This document shows positions 33,301 to 62,752 of a stretch of DNA of 64,000 nucleotides, piece by piece (position 1 is the stretch's first letter; each line of letters starts with the position of its first letter). The DNA comes from Haliotis rubra (Eukaryota), in contig NW_025766026.1 of the NCBI RefSeq assembly GCF_003918875.1, forward strand, positions 1,302,001 to 1,366,000, in the 5' to 3' direction. The notes below the pieces were generated by a model. That model was not told where the DNA came from, did not search any database, and saw nothing but the letters and a program-made list of their open reading frames with translations. The translations under genes were made by a program, and so were the position numbers.

Positions 33301-36300
33301 AATTTCGAACACTGTACCTTTAACTATGAGAGAAGGTAGAGAAAATATGAAGGTTACTATCAGAGAGTGAAATTAATTGTACATCACTCAAAATGTAGCA
33401 ACTGCAGTAGCCTGAATTGTACTCCAATGGTATCAGGTTGGGACCAGTAACTATTCCAAGGTTTTAGTTGTCTATAGTTGCTCCTATACCTCATGTGACA
33501 GGGGGAGTGTTGATGATTGTGAAGAACTACACTGGGGACCGACTCAACTTCGGCCTGGCTGCCGAGAGGGCCAAGGCAGAGGGCATCAGTGTTGATATGG
33601 TGGTGGTGGCGGAGGATTGCGCCCTCACATCCACGGACAAGACAGCCGGCAGGAGGGGGTCTTTGTGGGACGGTCCTCATACACAAGGTAGGAAGCTTCT
33701 TGTCAGCCACTGTTAGGCTGACTGTTAGGCAATCACTGACAGGAAGAATATGTGAAACTGAACACAGACCTGAAGGTGTGATAAGTGAACGCTGTGACCA
33801 CCACACTGGAATCACACTGCAAGTTATATGCGGAGTAATCTCCCTTGATAGTTTTCCTGGGTGATTCTCAATTACTGGTGCAGCCATCTCATCTACCTGG
33901 TCTGTCTCACAGTCCCTGAACCACTTTATTTTATCTTCCTCTGAACCCTTTCTGCAATGCTAAAGACCCAAATAAAATTTTCCACAGGTTCTGAATCTCC
34001 CATCTATGATCTCACTGCGTCACCTTTTCAATTTAAACAGAATTATTTGTTTCTATCAAAAATATATATATTCAAAAAACTATGTGTCGGTCTACCATCT
34101 ACCCTGTAAATGGTTTCATCTGAACGAAATATATTGATCAGATATCTTGTTTTGAGTAGAATCGTGCATTCCCTGTTTTAGATAGCGGGTGCCCTGGCTG
34201 AAGAGGGGAAGACTTTGTCTGAAATTGTGACCATTGCCAGAGATGCTGCAACAAAAAATGGGTGTGATAATTAACTCCTTTTTACTTATCTGCATCATTA
34301 AACTATTACTTTCCAGGCGAAGGTTTGTGTACATGTGGAACAGAGCTACAGATAACTTTTTGGGTCATTGAGTTATGTACTCGCTTGTGTTCATCTCAAT
34401 TGGGTATCCTAATTTTCCTTTGAGTAACATAATAAATTGTACTCACCTCACTCAAACTCAAATGGGTATTTTGCCAGTTTCCATTAATTTTAAAAATACA
34501 GAAAAGTTTAAATGTTAGTGTTTGTTATTTATAGTTGATCTGTAATATGAGAAATGATAAGAAAGACTGCAAGTTGATAAGTTCATGTCCTGAAATTGAA
34601 CCTCTCAATATACCTCAGTTATTTTATCTATCCATCAGTACGCTAGCTAAGGTTTGACTTTTTTATGTGTACGCATGTAAGATCATATTTATTGAGAATT
34701 TACAAACTTTCAAGCGTACTTGTATGCAATAGATTTAATAGAAATAGAGTTTTCATATAAATATTTGCGTAATTTACGCAGATACGCAGCTTATCTGTAC
34801 CTCTGGTGGAAGATTTCATATTCAATATTCATATATTGTATTTGATATTTATGCATTGAGCCACTCCAATTTAACTGAAAAATGTTTGAGAAAAAATATA
34901 TAAGGGAAAAAAAATAAGTTTTAAGAATAAATTAATAAATTGATAAATTGTTAATGTCATATGTATTTTGAGTTAAATGATTGAAAGACACATGCACTCA
35001 CCCCCACATACTATTGTTTGGTGGGAGGGGCTAAAAATGGCATTTAGTCAGATGTGACCGACATGTAAGTACATTGGGCCATGAGTGGTGACTTGATACT
35101 CCTTTGTGCCTGTCATATGTCACTGTCACATGTCACATGTCACTTGTGTTTCTGTAGGGACTATTGGGCTGTGTCTGTCCCCCTGCAGTGTACCTGGCTC
35201 CCGGACCTTCCTTCCACATCCAGGATGATGAGATGGAACTCGGCCTGGGTAAGTAGTGTCCTGTCATTTCCTTGTGCCTAGGTAGTCCAGTGGTCTGACT
35301 TTTTCACATATTTGTTTTTATTCTATCAATGAAGATATTTTGTATCAAATTTCAGTATATACACACTAGTAGTTATTATCCCCCCGGCATGTAACACGGG
35401 GGGATATAGCCAATGCCTCGTCCGTCCATAATCGGAAGATTGGTAGATATATCAAACAGAACCTAAGGTGGTGCCTTTTGCTATTTACAGATGTTTGTCA
35501 TTTTTTTTTTTCTTGGTTTCCATGGAAACATTTTGGACTTAGTCTTAAAGGAAGGGAGCATAACTCAAAAACTGTTAAATATTTTTCTGCAAACATTGGT
35601 AGATATATCAAACAGAACCTAAAGTGGTGCCTTTTGCTATTTACAGATTTTTGGCATTTTTATTTTTCTTGGTTTCCATGGAAGCAGTTTAGACTTAGTC
35701 TCAAACGGGAGGGGTGAGCTTTGTTTCTGAAGCACAACTCAAAGACCGTTCAATATCTTTCAACAAAAGTTGGAGGATATATCAAACAGATCTTGAAGTG
35801 GTGCCTTTTGCTCTTTGCAGATTATTGGCATTTACACTTTTCCTGATTTCCATGGAAACAATTTTGACTTAGTCCAAAAAATCAAGTTGGGCTTTAAGTA
35901 ACTGTCAGATGATTTGTTCTTTCAAATTTTTGGGGGCCGGGGGGATTTGTTATCTTCTGATGACTCTTGTTTCAATAGGTTGTTGTTACATTGCTTGAAT
36001 ATTCTTGTGGTGTAGAACTACAGACACTCAAGTTAGTCCCTGTATGTTTTATGTGGGTGTTTTCTCCAGGTATCCATGGGGAGGCTGGAGTCAAGAGGAC
36101 CAAGGTAGGGATCCGTTCATTCATATTGTTAAATAACCTTTGTTGCTGATGTTGCTGTTTAGTGACATATGGTGTGATGTACAAAGTATGCACAACTAAA
36201 TAGACTTACGCTGCATATCCCGTTGGGCCAGATTACAAGAATTTATCTTTCAGGCGTAATTCCAGCATAATATAAAATGTCATGATCAGTATGGCTGTCC

Positions 36301-39300
36301 ATTTTCATGGACAGCTTTCAGATACTACAATGAAACAACTTTTGTTTCATTATTAGTACAAAAGTACTTATAATCATTCTCCCATGGGCTTGTAGATATC
36401 TTAAATGCTTTGGACTGGAACCTGTAATTCTGACATTGCTAAGGGAGATAACTCCTCACAACAATACCGCTGGGCCACCTCAGTACGTTGACTGATGTTC
36501 ATGTAAGTTTCATTAACCTGCTACATTTCATTATGCTTGCTACAGCTGGTGAGTGCTAAGGAGGCGGTCAAGATGATGCTGGACCACATGACCAACCCGA
36601 AGACCACCACACATCTCAGCCTGTCTGCAGGTAAACCACCATTAGGAACCATAGGGCTGAGCTTTTGTTTGTTTGTTGTTTAACGCCGCACTCAGCAATA
36701 TTAAGGTTATATATGGTGGCGGTCTGTAAGTAATCGAGTCTGGACCAAGCAACCCAGTGATCAACAGCATGAGCATCTATGTACACATTTGGGATACTAT
36801 GACACGTGTCAACCAAGTCAGAGGACCTGACCACCTGATCCCGTTAGTCGCCTCTTACGACAAGCATGGGTCCTAGTGCTAAGCCCTGTGCTAACTTCAG
36901 TGCTAAACGTAGTGCTGTGATACTGCTTGACTGAAAATTAAATTTCGTTCTGCCTTCAACCTTCTGTTTTCCTGGGCGCAGCGCAATATAACCAGTTTAC
37001 CGGTATTTACCGGGTCAGACATGAAAATGATAGTATTGTAGTACACTGATTGAAAACCGGTATTTTGACATGCATTCGGAAAACTTCGTAACACTCGGAA
37101 GCCTTTGGATATTTCCTTGTTTCATTTGTGCCAGATATTATACACAGTTTTATTTTGTCATGATTAAAAGTTCTATTAAAGCTTAATCAAGCATAGTGAT
37201 TTTGTTGTGTTCATGCTTTATAAATCAAGCATTAACTTGATGATAAGTTGTTTTTTGTTTAAAAATACTTCTTGCAATATATTGCAATACATATCGCAAT
37301 ATATGCTTTCGCATTGCAATATATCGCAATATGAAAATTCTCTACAATACCCACCCCTACTGTTTTCTCAAACTGTGAGTGAGGGAGAGAATAAGAGTGA
37401 ATGAGTAAGTGTAAGACAGTGAATGACTTGCTGTCTCTGCAGCAGTTAAATATTACTGTTTTTTAAACGTTTATGGTATTTAAAATTATTTGAAAATTAA
37501 TTGAAAATTCCTCCAGCTGTCCCACCATTGACCATTGCTTGACTAAGGCCCACCTTTCACCTGCCTGTCCTCTGCATGTATTTTCCAGGTGACCGTGTGG
37601 CGTGTATGGTGAACAACTTGGGAGGAACATCCGTCCTGGAGCTCAACATTGTGGCACGAGAGGCAGTCTGCTACCTAGGTAGGGTTGGTGAAGAGAATCT
37701 CACCTGACTGTCTTCTGACATCAAATATACCTTAAAATAGATTTGAATCTTATAATATGTGTGCATATATATATATATATAATATATAACGTTTCACATC
37801 AGATGCTTGTTGTTTTAGATCAGCATCTCTCATTGTGCCATTGTGTTTGTGTTGCAGAGGGTCGAGGACTGAAAGTCGATCGCATGTACTGTGGGACGTT
37901 CATGACGTCGCTCCAGATGGCGGGCGTGTCCATCACCCTGCTTAAGCTGGATGACACATTGTGTCGCTGTCTAGGTAGGTGCCAGAGTGTCACTATGTGC
38001 AGTGTCAGATTGTGTCACTGTCAACTCGGACTGAAAGTCAAGGGAGCATGTATATGTAAATCTCACTCCAAATTTCAATGTGGCAGTCATACTGAAGAAG
38101 CTATTTATGTAACATAATGTATGATTGGTGGGTCTAAGAAAAATAAGTTGATACACAGATTCTCAAATCCACAGACCATAGGCGGATCCAGAAATTTAAT
38201 TTTCAAGGTGTTTGTGTGTGTGTGTGTGTGTGTGTGAACAACCCCACCTTGGCTCTGCCATTGCAAAACATTAAGTTCAATGTGGTCTTTAGTCATTTTA
38301 GTCATTTTCAGGGGGTTGGGGGTGTTTGTCTGAACCCCCCCTTTGGATCCGCCACTGCAGACACAGATTACGATTTCTCTGAGTCTGAAATCAGTCTATT
38401 GTGAGTGCCCATCAAAGATGTACGTAGATTACACTTAGATGTGACCTGTTGGACTGAATGTGTTCGCCAGATGCTCCAACATCAGCACCTGGGTGGTCGA
38501 AGCCGTACCTGCCTCGTGGAGTGACGGACAGACAGACACCAGGACAGATGACCATTGATGATTCAAGCACGGATACAGTGGTCAGTGGAGACGAGTCAGT
38601 CAGCTTGTCACAAGGTACATACACCATGGGAGAAATGATGTCAAGCTATCCACTGTGAACACGTTTTTATTAATCATCAAATGTGCCATTGTGTGATATA
38701 TACTAGAAATAATTGGATGAAATGTCTTCAGCCCATTTTGGTCAACTAGATTTACCACACTTGATTGTGAGAGAATGAATAAATGAACAGAAGAATAAAT
38801 GAACAGAAGAATAAATCATTATTGCTTTATGCTGCCTAAGCAATATTAAAGCTGTTCACAGTTTGTTGATAATGGCTCCAACATGTGGATGATAATGGCT
38901 CCAACATGTGGATGATAATGGCTCCAACATGTGGATGATAATGGCTCCAACATGTGGATGATAATGGCTCCAACATGTGGATGATAATGGCTCCAACATG
39001 TGGATGATAATGGCTCCAACATGTGGATAGAAAGAAGAATAAAGCATCAGAGCAAAGCTTACTTGCAATAAAATCTATATCGTGTCATAAACCTGTTTTC
39101 TTTCAAGAATGCTATTATCTTTTGATCATTTTATAATATCTTACTGTATGTGGAAGTCTATGAATGATTGTAGTTAGGGTTATATATTCCTTTAACAGGT
39201 GAGGTCAGGTGAAATTGGGTTTTACGCCGTGCTTGAGAATATTTCGCTCATATGACGACGTGCATGCGTGTGTATGTGTATGTGCGGCTGCTTGTACTAG

Positions 39301-41492
39301 CCCAGACTGAAGCTGGTTTTATAGTGCTAGCCCACTGAGATACCATGCCGCAGTGAAGCATGAATACCCCACTCAGACACATTATACTGACTCCGAGCCG
39401 ACCAGTCCTTGTTGTACCCATTAATGCCGAGCGCCAGGCAGGGACCAACAAGTACCATATTTTAACGTCTTTTGGTATGATGCGGTCGGGGATCGAACCC
39501 GTGACCTTCCGCTCTTTGGGCGGACGCTCTAACCACTACACTACGGCAGCTGTTTCCTTTAACAGGAATGTGGTATCCTGATGATTGTTGCATCCGTACA
39601 TCCAGCCAAAGACCATTCTTCAGATCCCCCTGTATGTGAAGCCAGGTCCAGGGGTCCCTACAGTGATGTAGTGGAGCTAACCCTTCTGGCTTGTTGGTTT
39701 CAGAGGATGGTGCCCGGCTGTATAATGTACTGTCTGCAGTGAGTCTGTCTCTGGTGGCTGCGGAGGGTCGGCTCAACTCTCTGGACCGCGAGGCAGGGGA
39801 TGGAGACTGTGGGACAACAGTCAGTCGGGGGGCTAAAGGTGAGTCTTGGGGGGGATTTAGATTATGGGACCATGGTCAGTCAGGAGATGAAGGAGAATCT
39901 AGGAGGGCATGGAGACTGTGTGATGCCAGTTAATTTTGGAGCTAAAGATGAGTCCTGGAGATGGAAATTATTAGACAGGGTTTGTCTAGCATCTTTAGGT
40001 GAATCTTGGAGGGGTACAGAGGGTATTGGCCATGGTTAGTCAGGGGCTGTTGGTGATTTCCAGAGGGGACCAAGATTATGGGACTGGGATTCTTGGAGAG
40101 GACTCAGAAGTCTATAGGTGAGTTGTGGAGTGTGGTGGAGATTTTTGGACAGGAGTGATAGGTGAGTATTGAAGGGGATGGAGACATTTGTAGGGGTCTG
40201 CCATTGTTTATAAGGGTCTGCTGTCATTTGTAAGGGTCTGCAGACTGGGGGCTAAAGGTAAAGGACCTGATTCCACATCAATACATGTGAAGGTATTAAG
40301 ACATCATGATATGTATATTTCCAGCCATCCTTTCCAAACTTGGTACGAAGGACAACCCAGGCTTGCCAGTGAGGAACCCATCTTCCCTGGCCCTGTCTCT
40401 GGCCAACATAGTAGAGACAGACATGGGGGGCTCGTCGGGAGCTGTAAGTGAAGCCAGTTCCCAGAAAATTGTTTGATCGGCATTCTAGTATTCCATTAAT
40501 TCCATCAATATCTTTATTTTACTCAATTTGGTAAGTGAAATACAAGTCACCTCCACAAAGTTGTAGCATTATTTATTTCTGTATGAAAAGGGAATTTTTT
40601 AATTCCATTGGGGAATTTTACAGACATTTGCTGCAGACTTGGGGCCAAATGACCTCCTCACAGCAGGCCTTGATAAGCCCCTATATGCCTTTTGAGCTGT
40701 TTTTATGTTGTATTTTATGTTGGAATAATGCACATAAACCTGGTCAGTCTCAGTCTCTTAAAATCTTTATCAATTTGGAAAATGGTTTTGCTTCACTAAA
40801 ATAACAGAAGGATATTAGATATAAACACCTTGATGCATCTATCTGATAATGCCGTTCAGAAAGTGATACTGAGATTTGAAACCTGATGGGCCCGTCATGA
40901 GTCATTTTGTTGAATGTGACTTCACCTGCCACCATCTGGCAAACGCTGAATGTATGACACGGTATTCTGTTGCAGCTGTACAGCTTGTTCTTGACTGCAG
41001 CAGCGAAGTGCCTGAAGACATCAGCAGGAGCTGCAGCATGGAGCACGGCCCTGCACCAGGGCATTCAGGCTGTCACCAGGTCAGTTTACCTGGTTCATTT
41101 GGTGGAAGGATCAGAATAATCCTACTACAGTCTCATACTAGCACGTTGTTTGGACGTTGCATGAATATTGCTAACAATGGTGAAATGTCTTACTGTAAAT
41201 TGCTGACACATCAACGAACAAGTGTCATGGTTGCTTTTGGAGGTTGGCAAAGAAACATATAAGTTTAGTCAGTGAATTTGCAGATACTGAACCATTGACA
41301 AAATGTAGTTTCAGGATTGTGTATACTTCTGGTATGTTAGCCTTCACTAGAAGAAGTATATTTCTAGAAATCTGCATATGTATATTTTCTGTTGTCCTCT
41401 GTTGCAGATATGGAGGAGCAGAACCGGGGGACAGAACCATGGTAGGTCCAGGCATTCACCTTGGTACTGATTGTAAAAAGCTTTCATATGCG

Positions 41493-41527
<35 letters not shown>

Positions 41528-43423
41528 GTTTATGCATGTCTGTGTTGCAAAATGGTTAAACTTCCTATGATGGGAATGATGCAGTAACAATTATTGTATA
41601 GGTAGTGTTTCTGTGTAAAAATATGATAAGTTGGTTTGGTTACTCTTTGATCATGAAAAGAAGAGAGACTTTGTTACCAGGTCCTGAGTTCTGGTCTAGA
41701 TATTGCCCTGTAATGCCAAATGTGCTGTGATATCATATACACATGCTAAATGTCAAGTTAGAGTGGATCTTTACTGACTTGAAGAGACATGATAGGATTG
41801 CCAGCTGACCTAGTCCTATTGCTCCCCTTAAAGCATAAACATGATAAAATTTTATAACAGGTGACTTTGTTTTGACACAGCTTGACGCCCTCTATCCTGC
41901 CAGTTCTACGTTGGAGAAACAGCTGCCTCAGTTACCTCCCCTGGAAGCATTTGCTAAGGCTGTGGAGGTAATGGTTTTTTTGTTTGTTCGTTTGTTGTTT
42001 AACATCGCACGTCAGAAACATTGCTTTAAGACGGAGGTCTCTAAAAAATCTGGACCAGGGCCCCGTTCCACAAAACGATCGTAGAGCTAAGATGATCGTA
42101 ACTCCCATACTTTAACATAGACTTACGACAGTCATAGAGCTAAGATGATCGTAACTCCCATACTTTAACATAGACTTACGACAGTCGTAGTGCTAAGATG
42201 ATCGTAACTCCCATACTTTAACATAGACTTACGGCAGTCGTAGCGCTATGATCGCTTTGAGGATAGGGGCCCTTAGTGATTTACATCAGCAGCATCGATC
42301 AACGCAACTGGGATACGATGACATGTGTGGTGCAAGTTAGTGAGCCTCACCACTTGATTCTGTCAGGTACCTAGTACGACAAGCATGGGTTTGCTGAAGA
42401 CCTACGAACCTGGATCTTCATGGGTCAACAAGGAATAGGTCACATTTGTGCTGTTATTGTACATCCTGTTGTCGTAGTGTTGTGTTGCATACATTCTTTG
42501 TAAACATTTACATTTTGGACAACTCCCCTGACATTCCAAATCATGATCCAAGGGTATATACAGTGTTTAAAACTCCCAAATTCCAAGCCAGACAGCCGGA
42601 CTGGTAACTTAAAAAAATTACCAGTCCAGATACAGACTTGCCTGTCCGGTTTTCAACATTAAAAAAATGTGACTGCCATTTCCAACTCGCGCAAGCTCCA
42701 TTCACTGTTTCTAGCCATCGAACTACATAGCACTAACAGGCAATGCACCAAGTTTAGGTAAACTGAAAGTACATGTGTTATGATTGGTTATCGTAACATG
42801 AACTGTACAATCGTATGTAGTTTAACATAATTTTCATAATACCTTAAAAGCCTCAAACTGACGACACAAGAACCTGTCTGATATTATGAAATATTTACTC
42901 TTAGGGGTAAAAATATCTACCAGACCACTGGACAGGCTACTTTTGAAATTTGACCATCCGAGATGAAAATAGACCGTTCCAGATGGTCGGACAGGCGGGA
43001 ATTTTAAACGCTGGTATATAAAAAAATAGCTCACAGACCTACACTTCTATTCTGCCAATGAACAGACATTTTTGCTTATACATGTAATATAAAACATCTA
43101 TTATGCATCAAGCAAATTGTGTATTTATTTCAAAATTTGGCAATGATTTTTCTCCAATTAATAAATATTACTCATGTAAATGAAATATGTAGATGAGTTA
43201 CAGGCCCTATGTGTCTTGTGTTTAGTGTTTCCATACCCTACTGTTGACACTCAGCATGATGTTGTTACAGGCGGCGCAGCAAGGGGCAGATGCTACAGCT
43301 GGTATGAAGGCAGGAGCAGGGAGGGCCAGCTATGTGGGGGCGGTGAAGCTCAACCAGCCTGACCCTGGGGCTGTCGCTGTCACAATCTGGATGAAGGCAG
43401 CACTTGCCTCACTCACATCATAA
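30395..43423 (+). CDS. TKFC: Triokinase/FMN cyclase (dihydroxyacetone kinase), copy A; 16 exons, about 591 aa after correcting three +1 indels
   Basis: Exons 30395-30602, 32179-32289, 33502-33687, 34182-34261, 35158-35248, 36070-36104, 36546-36630, 37589-37678, 37858-37974, 38471-38614, 39704-39838, 40325-40443, 40976-41079, 41408-41441, 41881-41967, 43271-43423. Motifs: [69 protein letters not shown]. As given, the sequence is frameshifted in exons 3, 4 and 5. Confidence 0.93.
32582..33314 (+). mobile_element. Internally deleted hAT element retaining the C-terminal dimerisation domain
   Basis: Perfect 17-bp TIR CAGTGTTCGAAATTAAC and 5-bp TSD TACCT. ORF 32786-33208 contains [36 protein letters not shown]. 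Confidence 0.9.
34341..34805. mobile_element. MITE with 6-bp TSD
   Basis: TIR CAGAGSTACAGATAA and TSD GTGGAA. Confidence 0.8.
35374..35970 (+). mobile_element. HINE/DINE-1-like (non-autonomous Helentron-type) element
   Basis: 5' ATCCCCCG..CGGGGGATATA hairpin, a TCCG microsatellite seed, internal tandem repeats (GATATATCAAACAGA..AAGTGGTGCCTTTTGC three times) and a 3' CGGGGGGAT inverted motif. Confidence 0.6.
38868..39028. repeat. 23-bp minisatellite, 7 copies
   Basis: Perfect copies of GATAATGGCTCCAACATGTGGAT. Confidence 0.95.
39795..40262 (+). repeat. Degenerate repeats of about 52 bp derived from the TKFC-A exon 11 3' end and donor site
   Basis: About 8 variants of GGGGATGGAGACTGTGGGAC...GCTAAAGGTGAGTCTT. 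Confidence 0.7.
42057..42272. mobile_element. Short palindromic MITE family (GGGCCCCGTT.CACAAA...); this copy has an internal triplication
   Basis: Related copies at about 23519-23630, 51240-51333, 55920-56135, 57317-57424 and 61897-62008. Confidence 0.7.
42561..43013. mobile_element. Second copy of the 7-bp-TSD TIR element
   Basis: CAGTGTTTAAAA...TTTTAAACGCTG with TSD GTATATA. Confidence 0.85.
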
Positions 43424-44110: not shown

Positions 44111-45164
44111 CTGGCCATGAAATACATATGCAGGATGATTTTTATTTCTGAATTTCACAGATACACAGATACCGATTTTCAGAAAGTTTACATTATCAAA
44201 TGTATTTTGAATATCAGTGACCTTAATCTACAATTTGTTTGTTTGTTTGTTGGTTGGTTAACGCCGCATTGAGCAATATCCCAGCGTGGTATGTATATAA
44301 TCGAGTCTGGAAAAGACAACCCAGTGATCAACAACATGAGCATCGATCTATGCAATTGGATACGATGACATATGTCAACCAAGTCAGCGAGTCTGACCAC
44401 CCGATCCCGTTCGAATTAGTCGCCTCTTACGACAAGCATGGGAAACTGAAGACCAAATCTAACCCAGATCTTCACAGGTGCCTTAATCTAGTGAATATTT
44501 TCACTGAATAAAAAGGATGAATGAATCAATGCTCTGATTCAGTGTGAGAGGAGGAATTGTTTCAACCTAAGTTTCATTCAATGTACTGTAATGATGAATG
44601 TGTAAGTCATATATTCAATATATGAGAAGGATGGACGCATCCGTTTTCTTTGGATTCATTGTATAGGAAGGTTGATCATCTGATTCAAAATATGAAAACA
44701 GTGTCAAATTCTGTTAATTGTTTTGTAAGAAGGATGAATGTGTCAATCGTCCTCTGATTCAATATATGAGAAGGATGCATGTACTTCCTTTGATTTTATA
44801 CAAAAGAATACATGCATGAGTGATTTCATTCAATGAAAAAGGATGTATATGTTGAGGTGCTCTTCTTTCAGTAACTAAGAAACATGCCTGTGTTGAGCTT
44901 CATATCATTCCTGTATATGAAACTGCTGACTCAACCTTCTGATTCCGTATATAAAGATGGATGTGTCCCATTGTGCACTGATTCAATGTTTTGTTTGTTT
45001 GTTTGTTTATTGTTTGAAGCTGTTGTTGGCAGTATTCCAGCTGTGTCACAGTAGTCTGTAAATACTGGACCAGACAATACAATGATTGACTTCATGTGCA
45101 TCGATCAGTGGATATAAGGATCCATGTCCCAAATTGTTAGTGATTTTTTTAGGACAAATGTATT

Positions 45165-51425: not shown

Positions 51426-51623
51426 NNNNNNNNNNNNNNNNNNNNNNNNNNNNNNNNNNNNNNNNNNNNNNNNNNNNNNNNNNNNNNNNNNNNNNNNNNN
51501 NNNNNNNNNNNNNNNNNNNNNNNNNNNNNNNNNNNNNNNNNNNNNNNNNNNNNNNNNNNNNNNNNNNNNNNNNNNNNNNNNNNNNNNNNNNNNNNNNNNN
51601 NNNNNNNNNNNNNNNNNNNNNNN
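51426..51623. other. Assembly gap (198 N)
   Basis: N run ending 120 bp upstream of the TKFC-B ATG. Confidence 1.
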
Positions 51624-51743: not shown

Positions 51744-54700
51744 ATGAGCGGACAGGGCAGCAAGAAGCTGATCAACTCCGTGGAGCGATGCGTGGACGAC
51801 ATGCTAGAGGGCTACGTGGCCCTCAACCCGGGGGTGCGTCTATTACACGGTCATCGTATCGTAATCCGGGCCGACGTCGAAGACTACGTGAAGTCCGGCA
51901 AGGTGGCTGTGTTGTGTGGGGGAGGGTCTGGGCACGAGCCAGCACAGGCAGGTAAAAACAAACGGAAGTATGCTACTCAAATCAAGTTAAGGAACACCAG
52001 CAATTGAAAGGCTGTATCTTGCAATATGTTTGTTTGTTTCTTGTTGAACAACGCACTCAGCAATATTCCAACTATATGGCGGAGGGCTGTAAAAAATCGA
52101 CTCTGGACCAGACAATCCAGTGATTACCACCATGAACATCGATCTACGCAATTGAGATATGATGTCATGTGTCAACCTAGTCAGCGAGCCTGACTACCCG
52201 ATCCCGTTAGTTGCCTCTTACGACAAGCATGGATTTGAAGAGGCCAATTCTAAGTCATATGAAACAATGTGTGTTAACTTTTTAAGTTCATTATACATCA
52301 TATACATTTTGCTATAACATTTTTGAAAGAAACATGACAAGAAATAACACATAATGCAGTTATCGTACGGTGCCCTGGACCAGGTAATAATGTAACTTAC
52401 GCGTCTTAATCATTCCAAATGAAGATGATACAATTATTTTGATTGTTTTCTGTGTACAAGGGTATGTTGGGCGGGGTTACCTGACGGCGTGTGTGGCAGG
52501 GTCGGTGTTCGCCTCTCCCCCACCCCAGGAAATCCTTCCGGCAATCAGAGCTGTGGCCAAACGGAACAAGGGTAGGTGTGGCGCTCTATGTTTGACCTTT
52601 ATAATTACTCGAGAGTCGTTGTTGTAAGAGTTAATTCTTTAGAAAACAAAACTACCCAAAGAGGAAAATTGAATATTTACCTAGGCCTTGTCTCTTTACT
52701 GTGTTTGTTTCCACCTCTGAAAATTCATGGAAGACAGACTATAGTCATCACTTACAGTCGTGTTTGGAGATCGGGATCAAACGCCTTTCTCTCAGGGACG
52801 GTAATATAAGATTGATTTGTGCAAGTTGGGCCCTGGCTGACCGCGTGTCTTAGTAGTAACGTGGATCTTTGTTCCAACAGTCAACAACTAATTCGCCTTG
52901 TCCTGACAATTATACAGAAGAATCAGTGGTTTTAGCAGGAAATAAGGACTGGTGTAAGTATTAAAGAATTTCCTACCACAAGATAACTCACATTCCCCGT
53001 GTGTTGTGACTGTGTCTGTACAGGCGGGTGTCTGTTGTCCGTCGCCAACTACACTGGAGACCGGCTCAACTTCGGACTGGCCTACGAGAAGGCTCGACAA
53101 GAAGGGATCAAAATCGCTATGATAGTTGTGGGCGAGGACTGCGCCGTGACGACAAACGACCGTACCGCGGGCAGGAGAGGACTTGTCGGATACATCGTTA
53201 CAAATAAAGTAATGTAACGTTTTGATTTTAACATTCTGACCAACGTCAAAATATTCGAGGTCACTATACATGGCATTTGCTTACATAAGAAAACTGTTTT
53301 GAATGGAAATAAAGAGTTTTTGTTTCTACAGTTAATGTTCTCAGGAAAACGAAGTCTCTATGTTGAGATGGGGCCTAGAGGTTAAAGCATTCGCTCATCA
53401 CGCCGAATACCCGGGTTCGATTCCCCACATGGGTACAATGTTTGAAGTCCATTTCTGGTGTCCCCCGTCGTGATATTGCTGGGACATTGCTAAAAGCGGC
53501 GTAAAACTAAACTCAATCACTATAACGAGGTCAGTGGTCTAAGTATCCGCGTTAAAACCCAGCCACCAACTGCTGGTTCCTGTACATAATTCGTTCACCG
53601 TTTGCTAGATTGCTGGAGCTTTGGCCGAGATGGGTCGGAGTCTGGAGGATATAGTTGAGATTACCACTGCTGCCACCAAACAGATGGGTAGGTGGAGAGG
53701 GGTGGCATCCCTGTGTTGACCATTTCAGAATAGGGTTTCACAGCGGAATAAACTACCGGGCGAAAGAAAGAAACTTGGATGTGACCTAAAGCTGACAAAT
53801 ATTATTAAGCTGACCTTTTATGACATACACAGTGATATAATGTTTGTCAAGATAACCGTATCAATGTATCAACATTGAATCACCATCTGCTGTTTGCTTC
53901 ATCTAAACATGGACGGATAACTTTTGCCCGGTATTTTATGCCCAACATTTCGGTAACGTGCAAAGTTGTCACCGCGGCCTATAAGTGATCTCAGAGTTAC
54001 GACTGACGCTACGGCCGTCCTAAAGTAAGGGAGGTACAACCGTTTTGGCTCTAAGATCGCTGGTTCAAGTCCAAGATTTCTGGTGATTATGGAGTTTGGC
54101 CTCCCAGAAAGGAATAAACTTAAGAGATATGCGAATCCTTGGGCATCCCCCCTACATTAATCTGGTTTTCCGTGATATGATGAAAATAACTTCAGGGACT
54201 ATCGGCTTGAGCTGGAGTGCGTGTTCCGCGCCAGGATCTGGACCCACGTTCAGCCTCGGGGATGATGAGATGGAGTTGGGTCTGGGGGCACACGGGGAGG
54301 CGGGCGTCAAGCGCATGAAGGTCTGTGGGCTTTTGCTACACTTGGCAACTGTATATATATACACAGTTTGGCAACATGAGAATCCATCAAACTTTATACT
54401 CTCAACAATCTGATGTCAAACTAAGATGTCTGTGCAATTATCATAATCATCAACTGCCAACTTGATATGCCAACTCCTTGGCATAGTGGATACAGCGCCT
54501 GCTCAGAGAGCAAAGGTCGTTGTTCGATCCCCGGCAGAGTCATAACGATACCTTTAAAATATGGTACTTATTGTTACCCCGCGCTTGGCGTTTAGATGGT
54601 AAAACAAGAACTGGTCGGCTCGGAGGTAGCATGCTGTGTCTGAGTAGGCTATCAATGTTAAACTGCGGAATGTTATCGCAGTAGGCCAGCACTATAGAAC

Positions 54701-57700
54701 CGTCGTGAAAACCTGTACAATCTGCAACACACTTACTCACGCACGACCATCATACGCCAATTTGCCTTACTGGGACATTGCTGTGTGTGCCGTAAAACAT
54801 CATTCACTCACTGTGACTAAATGAGGTTCCTGTTGGTAGATGACCAGTGCTAGGGAAGCAGTGACGATCATGATAGACCACATCACAAACCCGGACAACC
54901 CCACACACCTCAAGGTCACCAAAGGTGAGGGTCACGCCGACCTATTTCCCATCCGGTACAGGATGACATCAATACTTCTTCAATTACCACAATTAAAACT
55001 CGTACATTACTGTAATTAGAATACAACGCTTTGCAGCTTCTACACATGAGGGCAAAGAAATGCGGACCATTCATCTTAGAACGTCTGAATATATCATTAT
55101 CTTTGTAGATAAAACATACCATGATGCTAATGAGAATCCTCAACAAGATAGCCGTTCACGTCTTTTAGGTATACAGTGTAAATAAATAATTATTGTATCC
55201 TGCTCACAGGTGACCATGTTGCTGTCTTCGTCAACAACCTCGGCGCCACCACCGTCATGGAAATGAACATAGTCGTAGGAGAAGCAATTTTGTACCTTGG
55301 TGAGGCACATTATTTGTACATACTACTGAAAAAAACTTTAGTAATATGAAAGAAGTGGATGGTCCTTAACTTGTTTTGAGGAGGATGAACTCAGGTGTTG
55401 ATTTTCAGTTTAACCGATATGTATGTGACGTAGCAGAAGACGTCCACCACAATGCAGTGATTGGCTTAGTCATGTATAAGATATGGGACATTAAAACAAT
55501 ATTTTTATGAATGAACATCTACCTGATAGACATATTGCAGAACACATCGGTGTGTTGGTTGAACGATGTTACTGCCAGCGTTTCATGACGTCCATGGAGA
55601 TGGCGGGATTTTCCATCATGCTGCTGCTGCTTCTGAGTGACACTCTCACTCAGTGTCTGGGTGAGCTCGATCGCATGACACCAGCATGACACCAGCATGT
55701 CACCTACACAATACAGTATTCCTGTATTCCAGGCAACCACTATTGCCTTAAACCCGCCTTTCTCGGTCAGTGAATGTATTATGCAACTTTTAGCAATATG
55801 GCGGCGGTATCCTTTTTCGGGAATGGACTATATTGCTGGCTGCGGCATGAAACACACTGCAGTGAGTAAAATAACACCAGTTCCACCCCTCTTCACTCCG
55901 CCATGTCAGAACAGAAGCAGCCTCGGTTTCGTATAAGGTGTTTTTGTGTGGCGAGAGCACAACAAAGATATGACCGACAACTGGTCTATGTTAGAGCACA
56001 GGCAAACTGCAGCGCAAATAGGGTTGCGCAACAAAGAGAAAATGACCAGTTTTGCGAGTGTTGCGCAACCCTATTTGCGCTACAGTTTGTGAGTTACGAT
56101 CATTTTAGCGCAAAGGTCGCTTTGTGAAACTGCTTTCTGTACGAAACAGAGGCTTATGTTCTCTGGGCATGATAGGTGCGTGCATGCAAGAAGACACTAG
56201 TGCATGTCTGGTGTTGTAGATAGCCTGGGTATGCACGTGGATCGCGCGTACAACAGCCCCTTTAAAACCTCCCTGGAGATGGCTGGGATCTCCATCACCC
56301 TGCTTCGCTTGGACATAACACTAACCCAGGCTCTCGGTAAGCTAATGCAGCGTATTATTATGCTTTATATAACCAATCTATTATGATAAACGTCTTCGTC
56401 CCAATCACCTCAACAACTTCGTGTTGAACACTGTTTAAATTGCAATGAGCGAAAATAAGGAAGGGTTGAATTAGAGTAGAAATTTCACGACGTGTCGCTT
56501 CCGACAAGCAGCATTGGTGGTGAGGTTCAAATAATATATCAAAATAGTGCAAAAATATATTACACGGGGTAACTGTGAATGAAATGCATCATGATGGCAT
56601 GGCAACTGTTAGGTTTCATTTCAAGCATTTGTAGCAGCACGATATATAATCTTTGTAAAACTACCTGCACTGTTCACTTAATGACATACATGTATGTTAA
56701 AAAGAAACCTTGTATACTAGTACTTTGAAGTGAGGTGAGGTGAAATTGGTTTTAACGTCGTGCTTGAGAATATTTCGCTCATATGACGACGTGACTAGTA
56801 CTTTGAAATCGGAATTGGAACGCTTTTAGTGTTTTGTGAGTTTTGTGTTTTAATTATGAGTTCCTGGTTAGTTACCAGTATCCCTGATGAACTATATATA
56901 TGTGAACTGTATGTTGCATTATTGTATTACTCATGTATCTGATTGTAACCTTACCAATGGTATCACATTTTCTGGTGCAGATTTTCCAACAGACTCCCCA
57001 CATTGGCCACGCCCACTTCTACCACGTGGGGTGACTGACAGACAGACCCCGCCCCGTTTAGTGCTGGATTATATTGAGGACACGCCCAGTACGACCTTAG
57101 TGGGCGGGGCGGAGGTGGGATCAGGTACGCCATAGTATGATAATCGAAGAATTGTAAATATTATGTTGGTACCGACTTTTCATAAATCTTAAATGTGATG
57201 CTGAAATAAGTGAAGAGTTGGGTCCCTTTACAAGTGCTCGTGAAACATTACAGTTCAGTCATTTGTGGACATAATTGTGTCCTTTTTCCCTAAAATTTCG
57301 TCGTCATTGTAAACCAGGATATAGATTTTCGAAGCTCTCTTAGCGCTAAGATAGTCGTAAGTGCCATACATTAACATTAACTTGCGACTATCTTAGCGCT
57401 AAGAGAGCTTCGAAAATCTAGGCCTAACATATATAGGTCCTAACACTATAACCAGTGAAGATCTGGGTTAGAATTGGTCTTCAGCAATGCTTGTTGTACG
57501 TAAGAGGCGACTAACGGGATCGGGTGGTCAGGCTCGCTGACTTGGTTGACACATGTCATCGTATCCCAATTTGCCTAGATCGATGCTCATGATGTTGATC
57601 ACTTGATCGTCCGGTCCAATATTTGTCAATAATTGCTGACATCTGCAGGGATGATAAAGTCCATGCAGGTAGCAAAAGCACATAAGTCCCAATGGTCTCC

Positions 57701-60700
57701 AGTGTGGTGATGTGCCCTCAGTTTCTAGCAATATGTGGCCTGTTTTATGTTGTATTGCTGTGTATAGTAATACCTGTTTATGGTTTCACTGTAAATTTAA
57801 GTGTAAAGCTGTGCGAGTCTAGTTGTTTTAAAATAGTCTAAGTTAACTTTTATGAATAAATAGTTTTCAGAAATACTGCCGATATGACTTCACTCGCTCA
57901 CTCACGCATTGTTTTGTATTCACGTGTGTTCAACCCTTGTCACTTTCACCCATTTCAGATTATGCAGACAAACTGTACGAGATCATCGCGCACGTGTCCG
58001 AGAAACTTATGCAGAACGAGGCTCGACTGAACCAACTGGACACAACGGGGGGAGATGGGGACACGGGCAGTACATTGGCACGAGGAGCTAGGGGTGAGTG
58101 TCTGGAAAACCACAAAATATTTAAAATAATGAATAAAAAGGAATATTAGCTAAGTTATTTTGGTCGCCTGAATTTACGACAAGGATAAACCTGTGTCGTT
58201 TTAGACAGGGTAAGGACCGTTCCGCAGCTGCTGATATATACTACTCACACTTTGCTTAGGATCACAAAAATTCCCAACTTTACTTAAACGTAGATTAATA
58301 ATTTGAAATTGTATAATTTCATTTAAACTGGATAAATAATAATATGGTAACCCTTCTTTAGGCAAACAGCCACTTTAATCTAACCTTATGAACTTGATAC
58401 ATGAGTAACCATAAAAAATGGTTTTCATGCCACCAATAAACCATTTTGCAAATCATGGAACAAGTCCTTGACAAGTACACAACACCTGTCAATAGTAGGT
58501 ATTTGGATCCACAAGATGCAGTGGCATACTGAAACCTAGGACCCATGCTTACAATAGCTTAGATATTTAAACCAAATTAGACCCCACATCATAGGTTTCT
58601 GTTGAATCAATGACTTGATCCTTAGCAAAGTGTGAATAGTATAGTAGCCCTGAAGTATTTATCCCTTAAAGGAGGACTTAGCCAAGCCATGTTGGCAGTC
58701 CAGGCATCATTCAAATTCTTTTGTATGTAGGTAAGTTGTCATGCATTAAAAAACATTCAACAGGCTAATGTTTCCACGCTGATTTTTTCCACCTATTGTG
58801 TAACGTAGGTATTTAGGCAAAGTATGAGCTTTTTCAATTTGTACTGTTTCTTTTATTTTAGCCATTTTAAAGCAGCTTGGTAACAAAGACAAGCCCGGTT
58901 TGCCTGTTGATCAGCCATGTTCCCTGGTGCAAGCCCTGGCCTCCACGGCTGAAAACCAGATGGGGGGCGCGTCCGGAGCAGTGAGTTCTTTACTATTGAT
59001 GATTACAAATGCACCATTCTAATCGAAAATGTAGCGACAAAACCCTTTCCATACCAAACTGATTCCTATAATTGCCATGAAATGGGAAGAGTGACGAAGC
59101 CAGGTGCTCGCAAAGATGAGAGCCTACCTTGCTCAATACGTGCTTCCCGTGGCACAGCCTACAGTTCACCTGAAAAAAACCCACTGGAATATATGATACA
59201 CGCGAAATGGGGAATTGCATCGGACATCATTTTGGCCATCGCCATAATGGGTGCAGGACGTACAGATCACAGTAGCCTATACCGGCCTTGAGCCAGGTTT
59301 CACTGCTGTTGGTTGTGCGTCGTCGTGACGCGGATCGTTGCTTATGCTATCAACCACTTGTTTTCTAACCAAGACGTGCATAGTTACAGCTTAAATATTT
59401 CTGACACAAATGAACCTCAATTGTCATTGCAAATACTGCACGACGTGATTCATACCTTTAACACTGACTGACTGAGTTTGGTTTTAGCAATATTCCAGCA
59501 ATATCACGGCGGGGGACACCAGAAATGGGCTTCACACATTGTACCCATGTGGGGATTCGAACCCGGGTCTTCGGCGTGACGAGCCAACACTTTAACCACT
59601 AGGCTACCCCACCGCCCCTCATACCTTTAACAGCACGGGACGTCTGTACAGACGATCCTTCACTATACGAAGATCTGGCAGAGCCTAATGAACGTCTTTA
59701 TGGAATCTATTCGTATTTTCAAGGTCGAAGTGCACTTGCAGTACTTTACTGGAAGGTCGAAGTGCTCTTGCAATACTTTACTGGAAGGTCGAAGTGCTCT
59801 TGCAATACTTTACTGGAAGGTCGAAGTGCACTTGCAGCACTTTACTGGAAGGTCGAAGTGCACTTGCAGCACTTGCAGTACTTTACTGGAAGGAAAACGT
59901 TATAGAATAATATATTTCAAACTAGACTAAGAGATCGCACGAATGACAGACTGACATGTTCATGATGTACGTGATATGGATGGCATATTGTCTGAGGCTC
60001 CACTGTCATACTCTCGTAATCGTGGGTTCGAATCCTGAATCCTGATTAAAGATTTGGTTTGTCAGTCCTTACTGTTCAAATGTGGTTAACCAAAGTGTAA
60101 TAGTTCTCATACCTCCATCCCTTACTGTTCTCATTCAACTTTAACCAGACACGTGACGTAAGCAGAGTAATGCTCATAGGGGTGTTCGGGTAGCCTCGTG
60201 GTTAAAGCGCTCGCTCGTCACGCCGAAAACCCGGTTTCGATTACCCACATGGGTACGATAGGTGAAGCCCATTTCTGGTGTCCCCCGCTGTGATATAGCA
60301 GGAATATTGCTAAATGCGGCGTAAAACTAAACTCACTCACTCACAGCGTTAAAGCCAACCACCTCACTCGTCCAATGATACACTCTGTGACACTCTTCCC
60401 CAGCTGCACAGCCTACTGCTGACGTCAGCATCCAGCTGTCTGAAGGACTCCGTGACGGTAACGGCATGGCGCGACGCCCTGTCACAGGGGATAGACGCCG
60501 TCAGAAGGTGAGCCCATTGGTTTGACATTCGATCATAACCTCTGTACTTTTTTTATCTTCTTACCAAAGTCTTGTTGCTTCTTACATAACGTCTCTGTCT
60601 GCTGATATAGTGTATATAACTATATGCTAAATGATGTACTTTGCAGATATAGTGTATATAGCTAAATGCTAAAAGATGTACAATATAGCAATGGGGTATG

Positions 60701-62752
60701 TAACTGAATGCTAAATGGCGTATATTGTAGATATGGAGGCGCTGAGCCCGGAGACAGGACGATGGTGAGTAGTGACACAGACTTCTTAAGCGAAACTCTG
60801 CTATACATCTTCGATCGTTCACAGTGTTCCATATTTGTTAAGGATATCACTATTCCTTGGAGTAGGAACCACTTAGAGCCAAACTGTATGAACATCAGAG
60901 CATATCATAATAAATTCAAACAAAGTATATATCAATTCCAAATTTCTTATACCACCATTTCATACCTCGAAGGATGAAATTCATTTAGTATGCGAGACTT
61001 CTTGTGTATTCTGACAGTGATACAACCACCATCTGTATCGCAGAATAAAATAGTTTATCAAAACGAGAGGGGACGTAAGCCTATCTGTGCTCAACCCAAC
61101 AGCCTCAAGTCAAATAACTTGTGATGACATGTAGAAGTGATGACCGTGACTCGTCTCTCCACAGCTGGACCCCCTGTGTGCTGCGAGGGATGTGCTGTTA
61201 TCTAGACTGTCAGAAACAACGCCCATCCAAGCCTTCACGGAGGCGGTTCAGGTACGTCACAGGGTAGCATGTATCTACATGGGGAAATGTAGCATTCTTG
61301 ACAATGTCATGTCTTTTTACACTTTTCAAGGTTCAGTTTCAGTCAAATAAGACTGAAGGCTCCAGATACGGTTGTGTGGAACGTACGACTGTCCCCAAAT
61401 AACAACTATAAACAACTATAGGTCCCTACATATTCCTTCCTCATTCGTAATTTTTCGGTTGAGTCTCTGTTAACTCGAAGTATTTACGTCGGGCCCTTCA
61501 ACTTCGACACAACGGTGTTTGTATATTGATTCTAACAATGTAACGTTATATTTCATAGATACCAGGAGTCCCTAGCATAAGGAACTACATAGATGTAAGC
61601 ACTAGTTACAACTATCTAGAAATACATATTATACATTTCTGAATCAATACTCCATTCATTCTACTACTACAGCTACAGCTCCAACTACAACTACTGCTGT
61701 TGATACTACTACTTATACTACTGATTATAACGATATAACAAACAACAAACACAATACATTTATCATATAGCGCCTATTATCCACCATTAACACATAAACA
61801 ATATCTAACAGCATGCACACTGAAGATATGATGTACAGAACAGGTTTGCTGTTAGTTGGTGACCATGGATCGCTGTGATCTCGCATATCAGACATCAGGG
61901 TTCCGATCCACAAAACGTGCGTAACGTTACGACCTGTCGTAACTCTATAGTTGATCATAGGCTTACGAATGTCGTAGCGCTACGAACGCTTTGTGGATCG
62001 GGCCCCAGACTTGTAGTATACCGTAACCAATATTACTCTGGAATAAGATAGTTTTGAAAGATGAGGTTTTATTGCTGAGTTGAAAGCTGTCTGTGAGGGG
62101 ATTGCCCTGAACCACAGAGTTGGAACTGTTGGAGCGAAAACTTTGTCTACAGCGGCTCCCGTTCTCGGCTGCGTCAGAAGAACATCCACAGATCGAGATG
62201 TGTCGATTTTTTAGATATATACTCACGAGATCCACAAAGCCATTTATATGTAGGATAACTAATTTGGTGGTTTGTTAGTTGTTAAACGCCGCACTCAGCA
62301 ATATTCCAGCTATGTGGCGGCGGTCTGTAAATAAGTGAGTCTGGACAGGCAATCCAGTGATCAACAGCATGAGCATCATTGTACACAATTGGGATACGAT
62401 GACATGTGTCAACCAAGTAAGCGAGCCTGGCCACCCAATCCCGTTAGTCGCCTCTTAAAACAAGCATGGGTTACTGAAAACCAATTCTAACCCGGATCTT
62501 CACGGGTAGATTACGAATATGTTTTCGTGCATTTTTATGCTGTCCTGTCTTATGATTCTGTTCCTTAGATTACTGTAGAAGATATTTATCAATGGTCTGT
62601 TGCAGGCAGCAGAGAAGACAGCAGAGGCGACAGCGACAATGAGGGCATACGCTGGACGGGCCAGCTACGTTAACCCTGACCGTCTTACCCAGCCGGACCC
62701 CGGGGCTACGGGGGTGGCAATTTGGCTCAGGGCCATACTGGAGAAATTGTAA
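51744..62752 (+). CDS. TKFC: Triokinase/FMN cyclase-like, copy B (intact, about 589-590 aa, duplicated exon 9)
   Basis: Exons 51744-51951, 52461-52571, 53024-53208, 53609-53687, 54196-54320, 54840-54924, 55210-55299, [55541-55660 or 56220-56336], 56981-57124, 57959-58093, 58862-58980, 60404-60507, 60731-60764, 61165-61251, 62606-62752. Exon lengths match copy A apart from A's three indels, the fused exon 5/6, exon 9a and the last exon. The frame is open throughout. Confidence 0.93.
55541..55660 (+). CDS. TKFC-B alternative exon 9a (numbered by homology to copy A)
   Basis: ttgcag|...|gtgagc, phase 1-1, 120 nt. Encodes [40 protein letters not shown], homologous to copy A exon 9. Confidence 0.75.
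56220..56336 (+). CDS. TKFC-B alternative exon 9b
   Basis: ttgtag|...|gtaagc, phase 1-1, 117 nt (same length as copy A exon 9). Encodes [39 protein letters not shown]. Confidence 0.8.
59720..59892. repeat. 32-bp minisatellite, about 5 copies
   Basis: Unit AAGGTCGAAGTGCACTTGCAGTACTTTACTGG. Confidence 0.9.
62265..62506 (-). mobile_element. SINE-like family C (about 240 bp, TGTCGTAAGAGGCGACTAA hairpin, (AAAC)n tail); about 20 full or decayed copies
   Basis: Copies at about 10410, 16045, 17270, 21455, 23035, 26935, 30750, 36665, 42275, 44235, 52025 and 57453, among others. It shares the GGAATATTGCT...GGCGTWAAAC 3' end with family A. Confidence 0.8.

Follow-up and report, generated by a model that had tools for sequence, protein, structure and literature searches.

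A window of 64,000 nucleotides from the blacklip abalone Haliotis rubra (RefSeq assembly GCF_003918875.1, contig NW_025766026.1, positions 1,302,001 to 1,366,000 of the forward strand; coordinates below are those of the window) was analysed, in which motif scans and exon comparisons between the two copies identified two genes encoding Dak1 and Dak2 domains, as in animal triokinase/FMN cyclase (TKFC; FMN, flavin mononucleotide). Both lie head to tail on the forward strand, TKFC-A at 30395-43417 and TKFC-B at 51744-62752. To our knowledge, TKFC has been studied almost only as a single vertebrate enzyme, with regard to fructose metabolism, cyclic FMN, MDA5 and human disease variants. The subject here is TKFC-B, which retains the catalytic residues of the family and departs from it at several near-invariant positions of the predicted substrate site, including a lysine that is also replaced in many other invertebrate TKFC-like proteins (hereafter Lys-less, as opposed to Lys-type).

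Exon models with GT-AG junctions were built under the guidance of full-length homologues. The TKFC-A model has 16 coding exons and encodes 591 amino acids, whereas that of TKFC-B has 15 coding exons with an alternative pair, 9a and 9b, and encodes 590 or 589 amino acids, respectively. The span 51744-62752, singled out in an earlier sequence-only reading as a TKFC copy with altered motifs, runs exactly from the start to the stop codon of TKFC-B, and all 15 of its introns are GT-AG. The two proteins are 57.7% identical; 13 of the 15 B exons have the same length as their A counterparts and exon 4 differs by one codon (79 nt in B, 82 nt in A). The intron that separates LGLG from IHGE in A (35248/36070) is without counterpart in B (54196-54320), reflecting either intron loss in B or gain in A. 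The B model with exon 9b is 100% identical over 589 amino acids to the RefSeq protein "triokinase/FMN cyclase-like isoform X2" of H. rubra (P0156), and the A model is 100% identical to "LOW QUALITY PROTEIN: triokinase/FMN cyclase-like" of the same species (P0168). Both genes are thus already annotated in RefSeq, and B is not new as a gene. The features are as follows.

51744..62752, forward strand: TKFC-B coding span, ATG to stop (exon model; RefSeq identity; Pfam Dak1 2.5e-107, Dak2 2.7e-42)
51744..51951, forward strand: B exon 1, with the His of GHEP kept (51933-51935) and the second His replaced by Gln (51945-51947) (exon model; RNA-like contig on 51744-51904)
52461..52571, forward strand: B exon 2 (exon model; Pfam Dak1)
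53024..53208, forward strand: B exon 3, with VANYTGD (Lys to Ala, 53044-53046) and GRRGLVGY (Cys to Val, 53185-53187; Thr to Tyr, 53191-53193) (exon model; spliced contig 53071-53208)
53609..53687, forward strand: B exon 4 (exon model; spliced contig joining 53208-53609 and 53686-54195)
54196..54320, forward strand: B exon 5, with LGAHGEAG (Ile to Ala, 54288-54290) and the hemiaminal His kept (54291-54293) (exon model)
54840..54924, forward strand: B exon 6 (exon model; spliced contig joining it to exon 7)
55210..55299, forward strand: B exon 7, with NNLGAT (Gly to Ala, 55245-55247, ordinary variation) (exon model)
55541..55660, forward strand: B alternative exon 9a, 120 nt (conserved in H. 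cracherodii and H. asinina; depth in the RNA-like run)
56220..56336, forward strand: B alternative exon 9b, 117 nt, used in RefSeq isoform X2 (exon model; RefSeq match)
56981..57124, forward strand: B linker exon between the K and L domains (exon model)
57959..58093, forward strand: B exon with GGDGDTG, in which the Mg-binding Asp pair is retained and Thr stands for Cys (58063-58065, ordinary variation) (exon model)
58862..58980, forward strand: B exon with MGGASG (Ser to Ala, 58969-58971, the presumed equivalent of human Ser446) (exon model; PMC13663913 Table 2)
60404..60507, forward strand: B exon (exon model)
60731..60764, forward strand: B exon (exon model)
61165..61251, forward strand: B exon (exon model)
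62606..62752, forward strand: B last exon, with the loop Arg of AGRASY and the Asp of QPDPGA kept, stop codon 62750-62752 (exon model; Pfam Dak2)
30395..43417, forward strand: TKFC-A, the canonical comparator, 16 coding exons, signature K-H-I-C-G-C-S (exon model; identity to P0168)

In each of H. rubra, H. cracherodii and H. asinina, B has an uninterrupted reading frame of 589 codons. The ratio of nonsynonymous to synonymous substitution rates (dN/dS, Nei-Gojobori) is 0.113 for B between H. rubra and H. cracherodii (dS 0.43) and 0.096 between H. rubra and H. asinina, as compared to 0.146 for A, showing that B is under purifying selection and at least as constrained as A. Three sequencing runs contain the stretch, all as contigs, which demonstrate its presence rather than its level, tissue or 9a/9b ratio. 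In the RNA-like run X1, contigs skip the introns of B exactly at the modelled junctions, one joining exons 3, 4 and 5 and another exons 6 and 7 and running on towards 9a; depth was found in this run at exon 9a and none at 9b. The exon pair is conserved with open frames in H. cracherodii (L001 16743-16859 and 17491-17607) and H. asinina (L003 15791-15907 and 16723-16839), exon 9a being one codon longer in H. rubra than in these two species. The domain check against Pfam proposed in the sequence-only reading placed Dak1 (PF02733) at residues 22-340 and Dak2 (PF02734) at residues 413-586 of B. An AlphaFold model of B reached a predicted local distance difference test score (pLDDT) of 91.8, and its best structural match was the dihydroxyacetone (DHA) kinase of Citrobacter freundii (1UN8/1UN9), followed by DhaK, DhaQ and DhaL, a result that speaks to confidence and fold only. 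Together, the open frame in three species, low dN/dS, spliced contigs and confident structure model establish B as an intact, spliced, working gene.

In the assembly, it is A that carries two one-base homopolymer insertions breaking the frame, an extra G in a G5 run (33655-33660, at about 33660) and an extra C in a CCC run (35200-35202, at about 35202), and its GRRGLCG motif is readable only across the +1 frameshift at about 33660. The H. cracherodii orthologue of A has neither extra base, the corresponding exons being 185 and 90 nt long, and the RefSeq entry bears the low-quality label; on both grounds, the two insertions are probably assembly errors.

Substitutions at the predicted substrate site

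Seven motif differences between B and A were listed in the sequence-only reading, and all are present in the exon models once A is read across its frameshift: VANYTGD for VKNYTGD, GRRGLVG for GRRGLCG, NNLGAT for NNLGGT, DGDTG for DGDCG and MGGASG for MGGSSG, together with Gln for the second His of the GHEP motif and Ala for Ile in LGxHGE. An eighth and strongly diagnostic change, the replacement by Tyr of the Thr that follows GRRGLxG (T163Y, 53191-53193), had not been noticed. The Lys of KNYTGD is annotated in UniProt and crystal structures as a contact of dihydroxyacetone, a putative role that found no mention in the papers searched for it.

The functional weight of other positions has been established for the human enzyme. 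The substrate binds the His of xHGE as a hemiaminal, and replacing this His in human TKFC abolishes the kinase and largely spares the cyclase (PMC13663913). Substitution of His221, Thr112 or Ser446 impairs the kinase far more strongly than the cyclase, mutation of Ser446 lowering triokinase activity with only a slight effect on the cyclase, whereas the Asp residues of DGD and DPG are required for both activities (PMC13663913). As previously proposed from the letters of the window, the His of xHGE, the His of GHEP and the Asp of NYTGD are kept in B, which was confirmed in both the exon models and the alignment, as is the Thr of NYTGD. B further retains the Mg- and nucleotide-binding residues of the L domain, namely the Asp pair of DGD, the glycines of GGxSG, the Arg of AGR and the Asp of DPG (in GGDGDTG, MGGASG, AGRASY and QPDPGA). 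In this family, the K domain of one subunit and the L domain of its partner together form each active site. In alignment A1, H64, H227, T117 and D119 are invariant, as are D414, D416, G461, G462 and G465, with R559 and D572 nearly so.

The frequency of each substitution was determined from 150 representatives found with B exon 3 and 120 named proteins found with a B-type protein of Littorina, from which 141 proteins of 500-700 residues were aligned. Site counts compare 74 Lys-type proteins, from outgroups and from cnidarians to vertebrates (Lys in 74/74 by definition), with 63 Lys-less invertebrate proteins, Haliotis B being excluded. The second His of GHEPAHAG is His in 72/72 Lys-type proteins and is lost in 43/63 Lys-less ones (Gln in B), and the Thr after GRRGLCG is present in 73/74 Lys-type proteins and lost in 32/63 Lys-less ones (Tyr in B). 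The residue equivalent to Ser446 is Ser or Thr, and never Ala, in the Lys-type set, whereas Ala, the state of B, occurs in 19 of the 63 Lys-less proteins. Likewise, the variable residue of GRRGLxG is Cys or Ala but never Val in Lys-type proteins (Val in 12/63 Lys-less proteins and in B), and that of LGxHGE is Ile, Leu, Val or Met but never Ala (Ala in 8/63 Lys-less proteins and in B). At the hemiaminal His, the His of GHEP and the Asp of NYTGD, neither set shows any variation where aligned.

Two of the seven differences behave otherwise. The NNLGAT state is found in 4/74 Lys-type and 4/63 Lys-less proteins, and so is the DGDTG state (4/74 and 4/63); since both are equally rare in the two sets, and since GDGDTG is the motif of the C. 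freundii DHA kinase, these two changes in B are ordinary variation. The earlier proposal that both the substrate-site and the nucleotide-site motifs of B are altered therefore stands for the Lys, the second His, the Ser446 equivalent, GRRGLxG and LGxHGE, all of which are changes at near-invariant residues, and falls for NNLGAT and DGDTG. Substitutions of this kind would speak against the proposal if common in ordinary TKFC orthologues, as the same reading had pointed out; similar ones are indeed common among Lys-less paralogues and isoforms, but not among canonical orthologues.

An unbiased scan of 160 columns, each with a conservation of at least 93% among 45 named metazoan TKFCs that carry the Lys, found no departure in A and 15 in B, a contrast beyond chance. 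Of the 15, H68Q, K114A, T163Y and S463A recur in other Lys-less groups. The NCBIfam equivalog model for glycerone kinase, TIGR02361 (dak_ATP, cutoff 574.95), accepts A with a score of 618.5, whereas B scores 559.4, below the cutoff; B passes the broader model NF011049 (497.5, cutoff 492).

As compared to canonical animal TKFC, represented by the human enzyme and here by A, B thus shares the Dak1-Dak2 architecture, length, exon pattern, catalytic His, GHEP His, NYTGD Thr and Asp, the Asp residues of DGD and DPG and the loop Arg, whereas it differs in the four residues named above (the KNYTGD Lys, the second GHEPAHAG His, the Thr after GRRGLCG and the Ser446 equivalent), in belonging to a separate clade and in its equivalog score. 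Also close is the well-studied ATP-dependent DHA kinase of C. freundii (1UN8/1UN9), which is both the best sequence match to B (4.8e-81) and the best structural match (template modelling scores 0.68/0.73), with the same fold, domain order and GDGDTG motif. This bacterial enzyme nevertheless has VKNYTGD, GHEPAHVG, GIHGE, RGIAGT and MGGSSG, that is, the canonical states lost in B. More remote structural relatives of both B domains (E ~1e-5, 10-20% identity) are the FakA/FakB fatty-acid kinase and DegV proteins, which are separate subunits acting on a lipid substrate and are an analogy rather than a sign of family membership; they show that a kinase of this two-part design can be adapted to very different substrates by way of its substrate-binding domain.

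Origin of TKFC-B and Lys-less forms across invertebrates

In a tree of 89 proteins, Haliotis B groups with gastropod Lys-less proteins (Shimodaira-Hasegawa-like approximate likelihood ratio test, SH-aLRT, 99), and in a tree of 44 molluscan proteins with six non-molluscan lophotrochozoan outgroups, a gastropod B clade of eight proteins was recovered (ultrafast bootstrap 97, SH-aLRT 98). Its members come from Patella, Littorina, Babylonia, Pomacea, Gigantopelta and Haliotis and are all Lys-less, whereas A groups with the Lys-type genes of Patella, Gigantopelta and caenogastropods. The tandem order, A then B, is common to H. rubra, H. cracherodii, H. asinina and Littorina, and in Patella vulgata both genes lie on one chromosome, more than 10 kb apart. 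Given the presence of the B clade across gastropods and the shared tandem order, the duplication that separated A from B is at least as old as crown gastropods. Branches of the B lineage are about 1.1-1.4 times as long as those of the A lineage over the same splits, and within Haliotis B is not faster than A. In H. asinina, a third Dak1/Dak2 gene with a B-type exon 3 (VANYTGD ... GQRGLVGY) was observed about 8 kb downstream of B (L003 29529-31734); it is a further tandem copy of B, seen in neither the H. rubra window nor H. cracherodii.

Loss of the Lys extends well beyond gastropod B genes, to proteins of oysters, cephalopods, heterobranch snails, echinoderms, hemichordates, tunicates, amphioxus, chelicerates and myriapods, and the tree requires at least 13 changes of the Lys state, the replacing residues being T, A, P, S, I, L and M. 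The relatives of B include a second oyster gene, paralogues in echinoderms, hemichordates and tunicates, a second amphioxus gene, and exon-3 isoforms of Mytilus and Lingula, and they share with B the loss of the Lys, often accompanied by that of the second His, the Thr and the Ser, with the catalytic residues kept. The assumption that animal TKFC is usually single-copy therefore fails for invertebrates, since many molluscs, echinoderms, amphioxus and others have either two genes or two copies of exon 3.

The latter arrangement involves the homologue of B exon 3, the exon that carries both VANYTGD and GRRGLVGY in the abalone gene. In Mytilus trossulus (L004 4015 and 4458) and Lingula anatina (L005 2077 and 2713), it is present as two tandem alternative copies per gene, the first without and the second with the Lys, and two annotated Mytilus isoforms differ in exon 3 only. 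These isoforms retain the second His, which is encoded by the shared exon 1, whereas most full gene duplicates have lost it. In a tree of exon 3 alone (61 columns), approximately unbiased tests do not reject one clade per species (p 0.32 and 0.68), so that the exon pairs may be ancient or may have arisen more than once. A database entry containing both Lingula-type exon-3 motifs (P0001) appears to be a gene prediction into which the two copies have both been taken. Within a limited collection of literature, in which absence is not proof, no functional description of Lys-less TKFC paralogues or alternative exon 3 copies was found.

A separate case is offered by the heterobranch snails (Lymnaea, Physella, Bulinus, Bradybaena, Elysia and Plakobranchus), whose sole sampled TKFC forms a long branch on the side of A and has Thr in place of the Lys, with the second His kept; here the canonical gene itself could have changed.

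Possible functions of TKFC-B

A shifted substrate site in B is a reasonable inference, since B is changed at residues invariant in ordinary TKFC and the catalytic residues are kept. With slightly better than even confidence, we take B to be an active, covalent, ATP-dependent kinase with a remodelled triose pocket, the product of an ancient tandem duplication, which would differ from A in substrate preference or kinetics. According to this model, tandem duplication of TKFC yielded a functional copy in which the two-domain DHA-kinase fold and the complete set of catalytic residues are retained and three near-invariant K-domain residues are replaced, the putative DHA-contact Lys by Ala, the second His of GHEPAHAG by Gln and the Thr after GRRGLCG by Tyr, along with the Ser446 equivalent of the L domain by Ala. 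Having lost one positive charge and two polar partners, the triose pocket of B would be less basic, which may alter substrate preference or kinetics. B would still operate as an ATP-dependent covalent kinase, possibly also as a cyclase, and A, which matches the canonical consensus perfectly, would do the housekeeping triokinase/FMN-cyclase job.

Several observations weigh against such a remodelled kinase. The position of the three changed residues in the pocket is itself presumed. What replaces the Lys is not constant within the B clade (A, S or P, and A as opposed to S even within Haliotis), a pattern more suggestive of relaxed constraint than of the gain of a particular contact. Because Lys-less queries served to seed both protein samples, the Lys-less share is inflated. 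In independent contrasts, loss of the Lys and loss of the second His went the same way in 4/9 pairs and the opposite way in none (p 0.125), and loss of the Lys and of the Thr in about 5/9 pairs, again with none opposite (p 0.06); the second His and the Thr were lost only where the Lys was lost, the pairs being too few for significance, and the corresponding contrast for the Ser gave p 1. Finally, among the sampled proteins, tunicates, cephalopods, heterobranch snails, chelicerates and myriapods show Lys-less forms only, and if this pattern is real, Lys-less enzymes can fill the housekeeping role.

The variable Lys site and the Lys-less-only lineages would also fit a simpler explanation, in which B is an ordinary isozyme that catalyses the same triokinase/FMN-cyclase reactions as A and has been retained for dosage or for expression in particular tissues or conditions, its pocket changes being near-neutral. 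The retention of all catalytic residues in B and the ordinary nature of two of the seven motif changes point in the same direction. It is difficult to reconcile this explanation with the near-invariance of the Lys, the second His and the Thr in the 74 Lys-type proteins, which cover outgroups, cnidarians and vertebrates, with the 15 conserved-column departures of B against none of A, with the parallel change of the same positions in many independent duplicates and alternative exon 3 copies, or with the score of B below the glycerone-kinase equivalog cutoff. We therefore regard an unaltered isozyme as rather unlikely, albeit the strongest competitor.

The separability of the two activities in human TKFC (PMC13663913) raises the prospect that B is a specialised FAD-AMP lyase (FMN cyclase; FAD, flavin adenine dinucleotide) whose triokinase activity would be weak or absent. 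In B, Ala occurs naturally at the Ser446 equivalent, and the putative triose-contact Lys is missing, as might be expected of such an enzyme. However, none of the 63 Lys-less proteins shows a change, where aligned, in the hemiaminal His, the His of GHEP or the Asp of NYTGD, even though replacement of the His leaves the human cyclase largely intact, and a pure cyclase would not need these residues kept for several hundred million years. Because Lys-less proteins keep all three without exception, B is most likely still a kinase, and specialisation as a cyclase seems improbable.

It had also been suggested that B may serve a non-catalytic role, that is, as a sensor or regulator binding a small carbonyl ligand or a partner protein. 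There are precedents for this on both counts. DhaQ of Lactococcus lactis (2IU4/2IU6; NCBIfam TIGR02362) is a DhaK-fold paralogue whose role changed after duplication to that of a transcriptional co-activator, and it is a structural match for the K domain of B; in mammals, TKFC binds MDA5, and catalytically inactive human TKFC still inhibits MDA5 signalling (PMC13663913). DhaQ, however, consists of a K domain alone and is not an enzyme, whereas B has a complete and conserved ATP-binding L domain with all Mg/ATP residues (DGD, the Gly residues of GGxSG, AGR and DPG), and B scores 212 bits against the DhaQ-type model, well under its cutoff of 413.25. The dN/dS of about 0.1 extends over the whole length of B, no sequence sign of a new interaction surface was seen, and abalone are reported to be without MAVS and to have divergent RIG-like genes (PMC11103948). 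With its catalytic and nucleotide-binding residues all conserved, a non-catalytic B is disfavoured and very unlikely. A decaying pseudogene or assembly artefact is ruled out by the open frame in three species, the low dN/dS, the GT-AG introns, the spliced RNA-like contigs and the RefSeq match, and the frameshifts sit in A, not B.

Taken beyond abalone, the remodelled-kinase interpretation of B allows a broader and more tentative proposal, which we consider possible but less than probable. Lys-less TKFC forms may represent a second, so far undescribed invertebrate enzyme activity, a kinase for a carbonyl substrate other than dihydroxyacetone or glyceraldehyde, in which the hemiaminal chemistry is kept and the pocket is altered through duplication of the gene (gastropods, oysters, echinoderms, hemichordates, tunicates and amphioxus) or through mutually exclusive exon 3 copies (mussel and brachiopod); abalone TKFC-B would be one fully separated example. 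Many invertebrates keep a second TKFC form in which the presumed triose-contact Lys and its partner residues are replaced and the catalytic machinery is untouched. This form has been reached repeatedly, by duplicating either the whole gene or exon 3 only, so that gene duplication and alternative splicing would have led to the same end. For an enzyme with two activities that are hard to separate, the Lys-less forms offer a natural separation-of-function series, and the interest lies less in abalone B alone than in the recurrent, testable pattern to which it belongs.

Surroundings of the locus

A run of 198 N at 51426-51623 lies about 120 bases 5' of the B start codon and renders the 5' untranslated region and promoter of B unreadable here. 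A Pfam search of the open reading frame downstream of B returned no domain. The segment 63394-63807 is about 74% identical at the DNA level to the region of H. cracherodii just 3' of B, where a minus-strand PLD-domain gene ends, indicating that synteny reaches past B. The introns of B contain repeats at 51944-52343, 53344-53543, 56544-56943 and 57144-57743, with related copies elsewhere in the window, e.g. at 30750-30900, 36660-36870 and 44230-44500. The contig word depth of these repeats is thousands of times that of the flanking sequence, which points to a very abundant family of interspersed elements resembling short interspersed nuclear elements.

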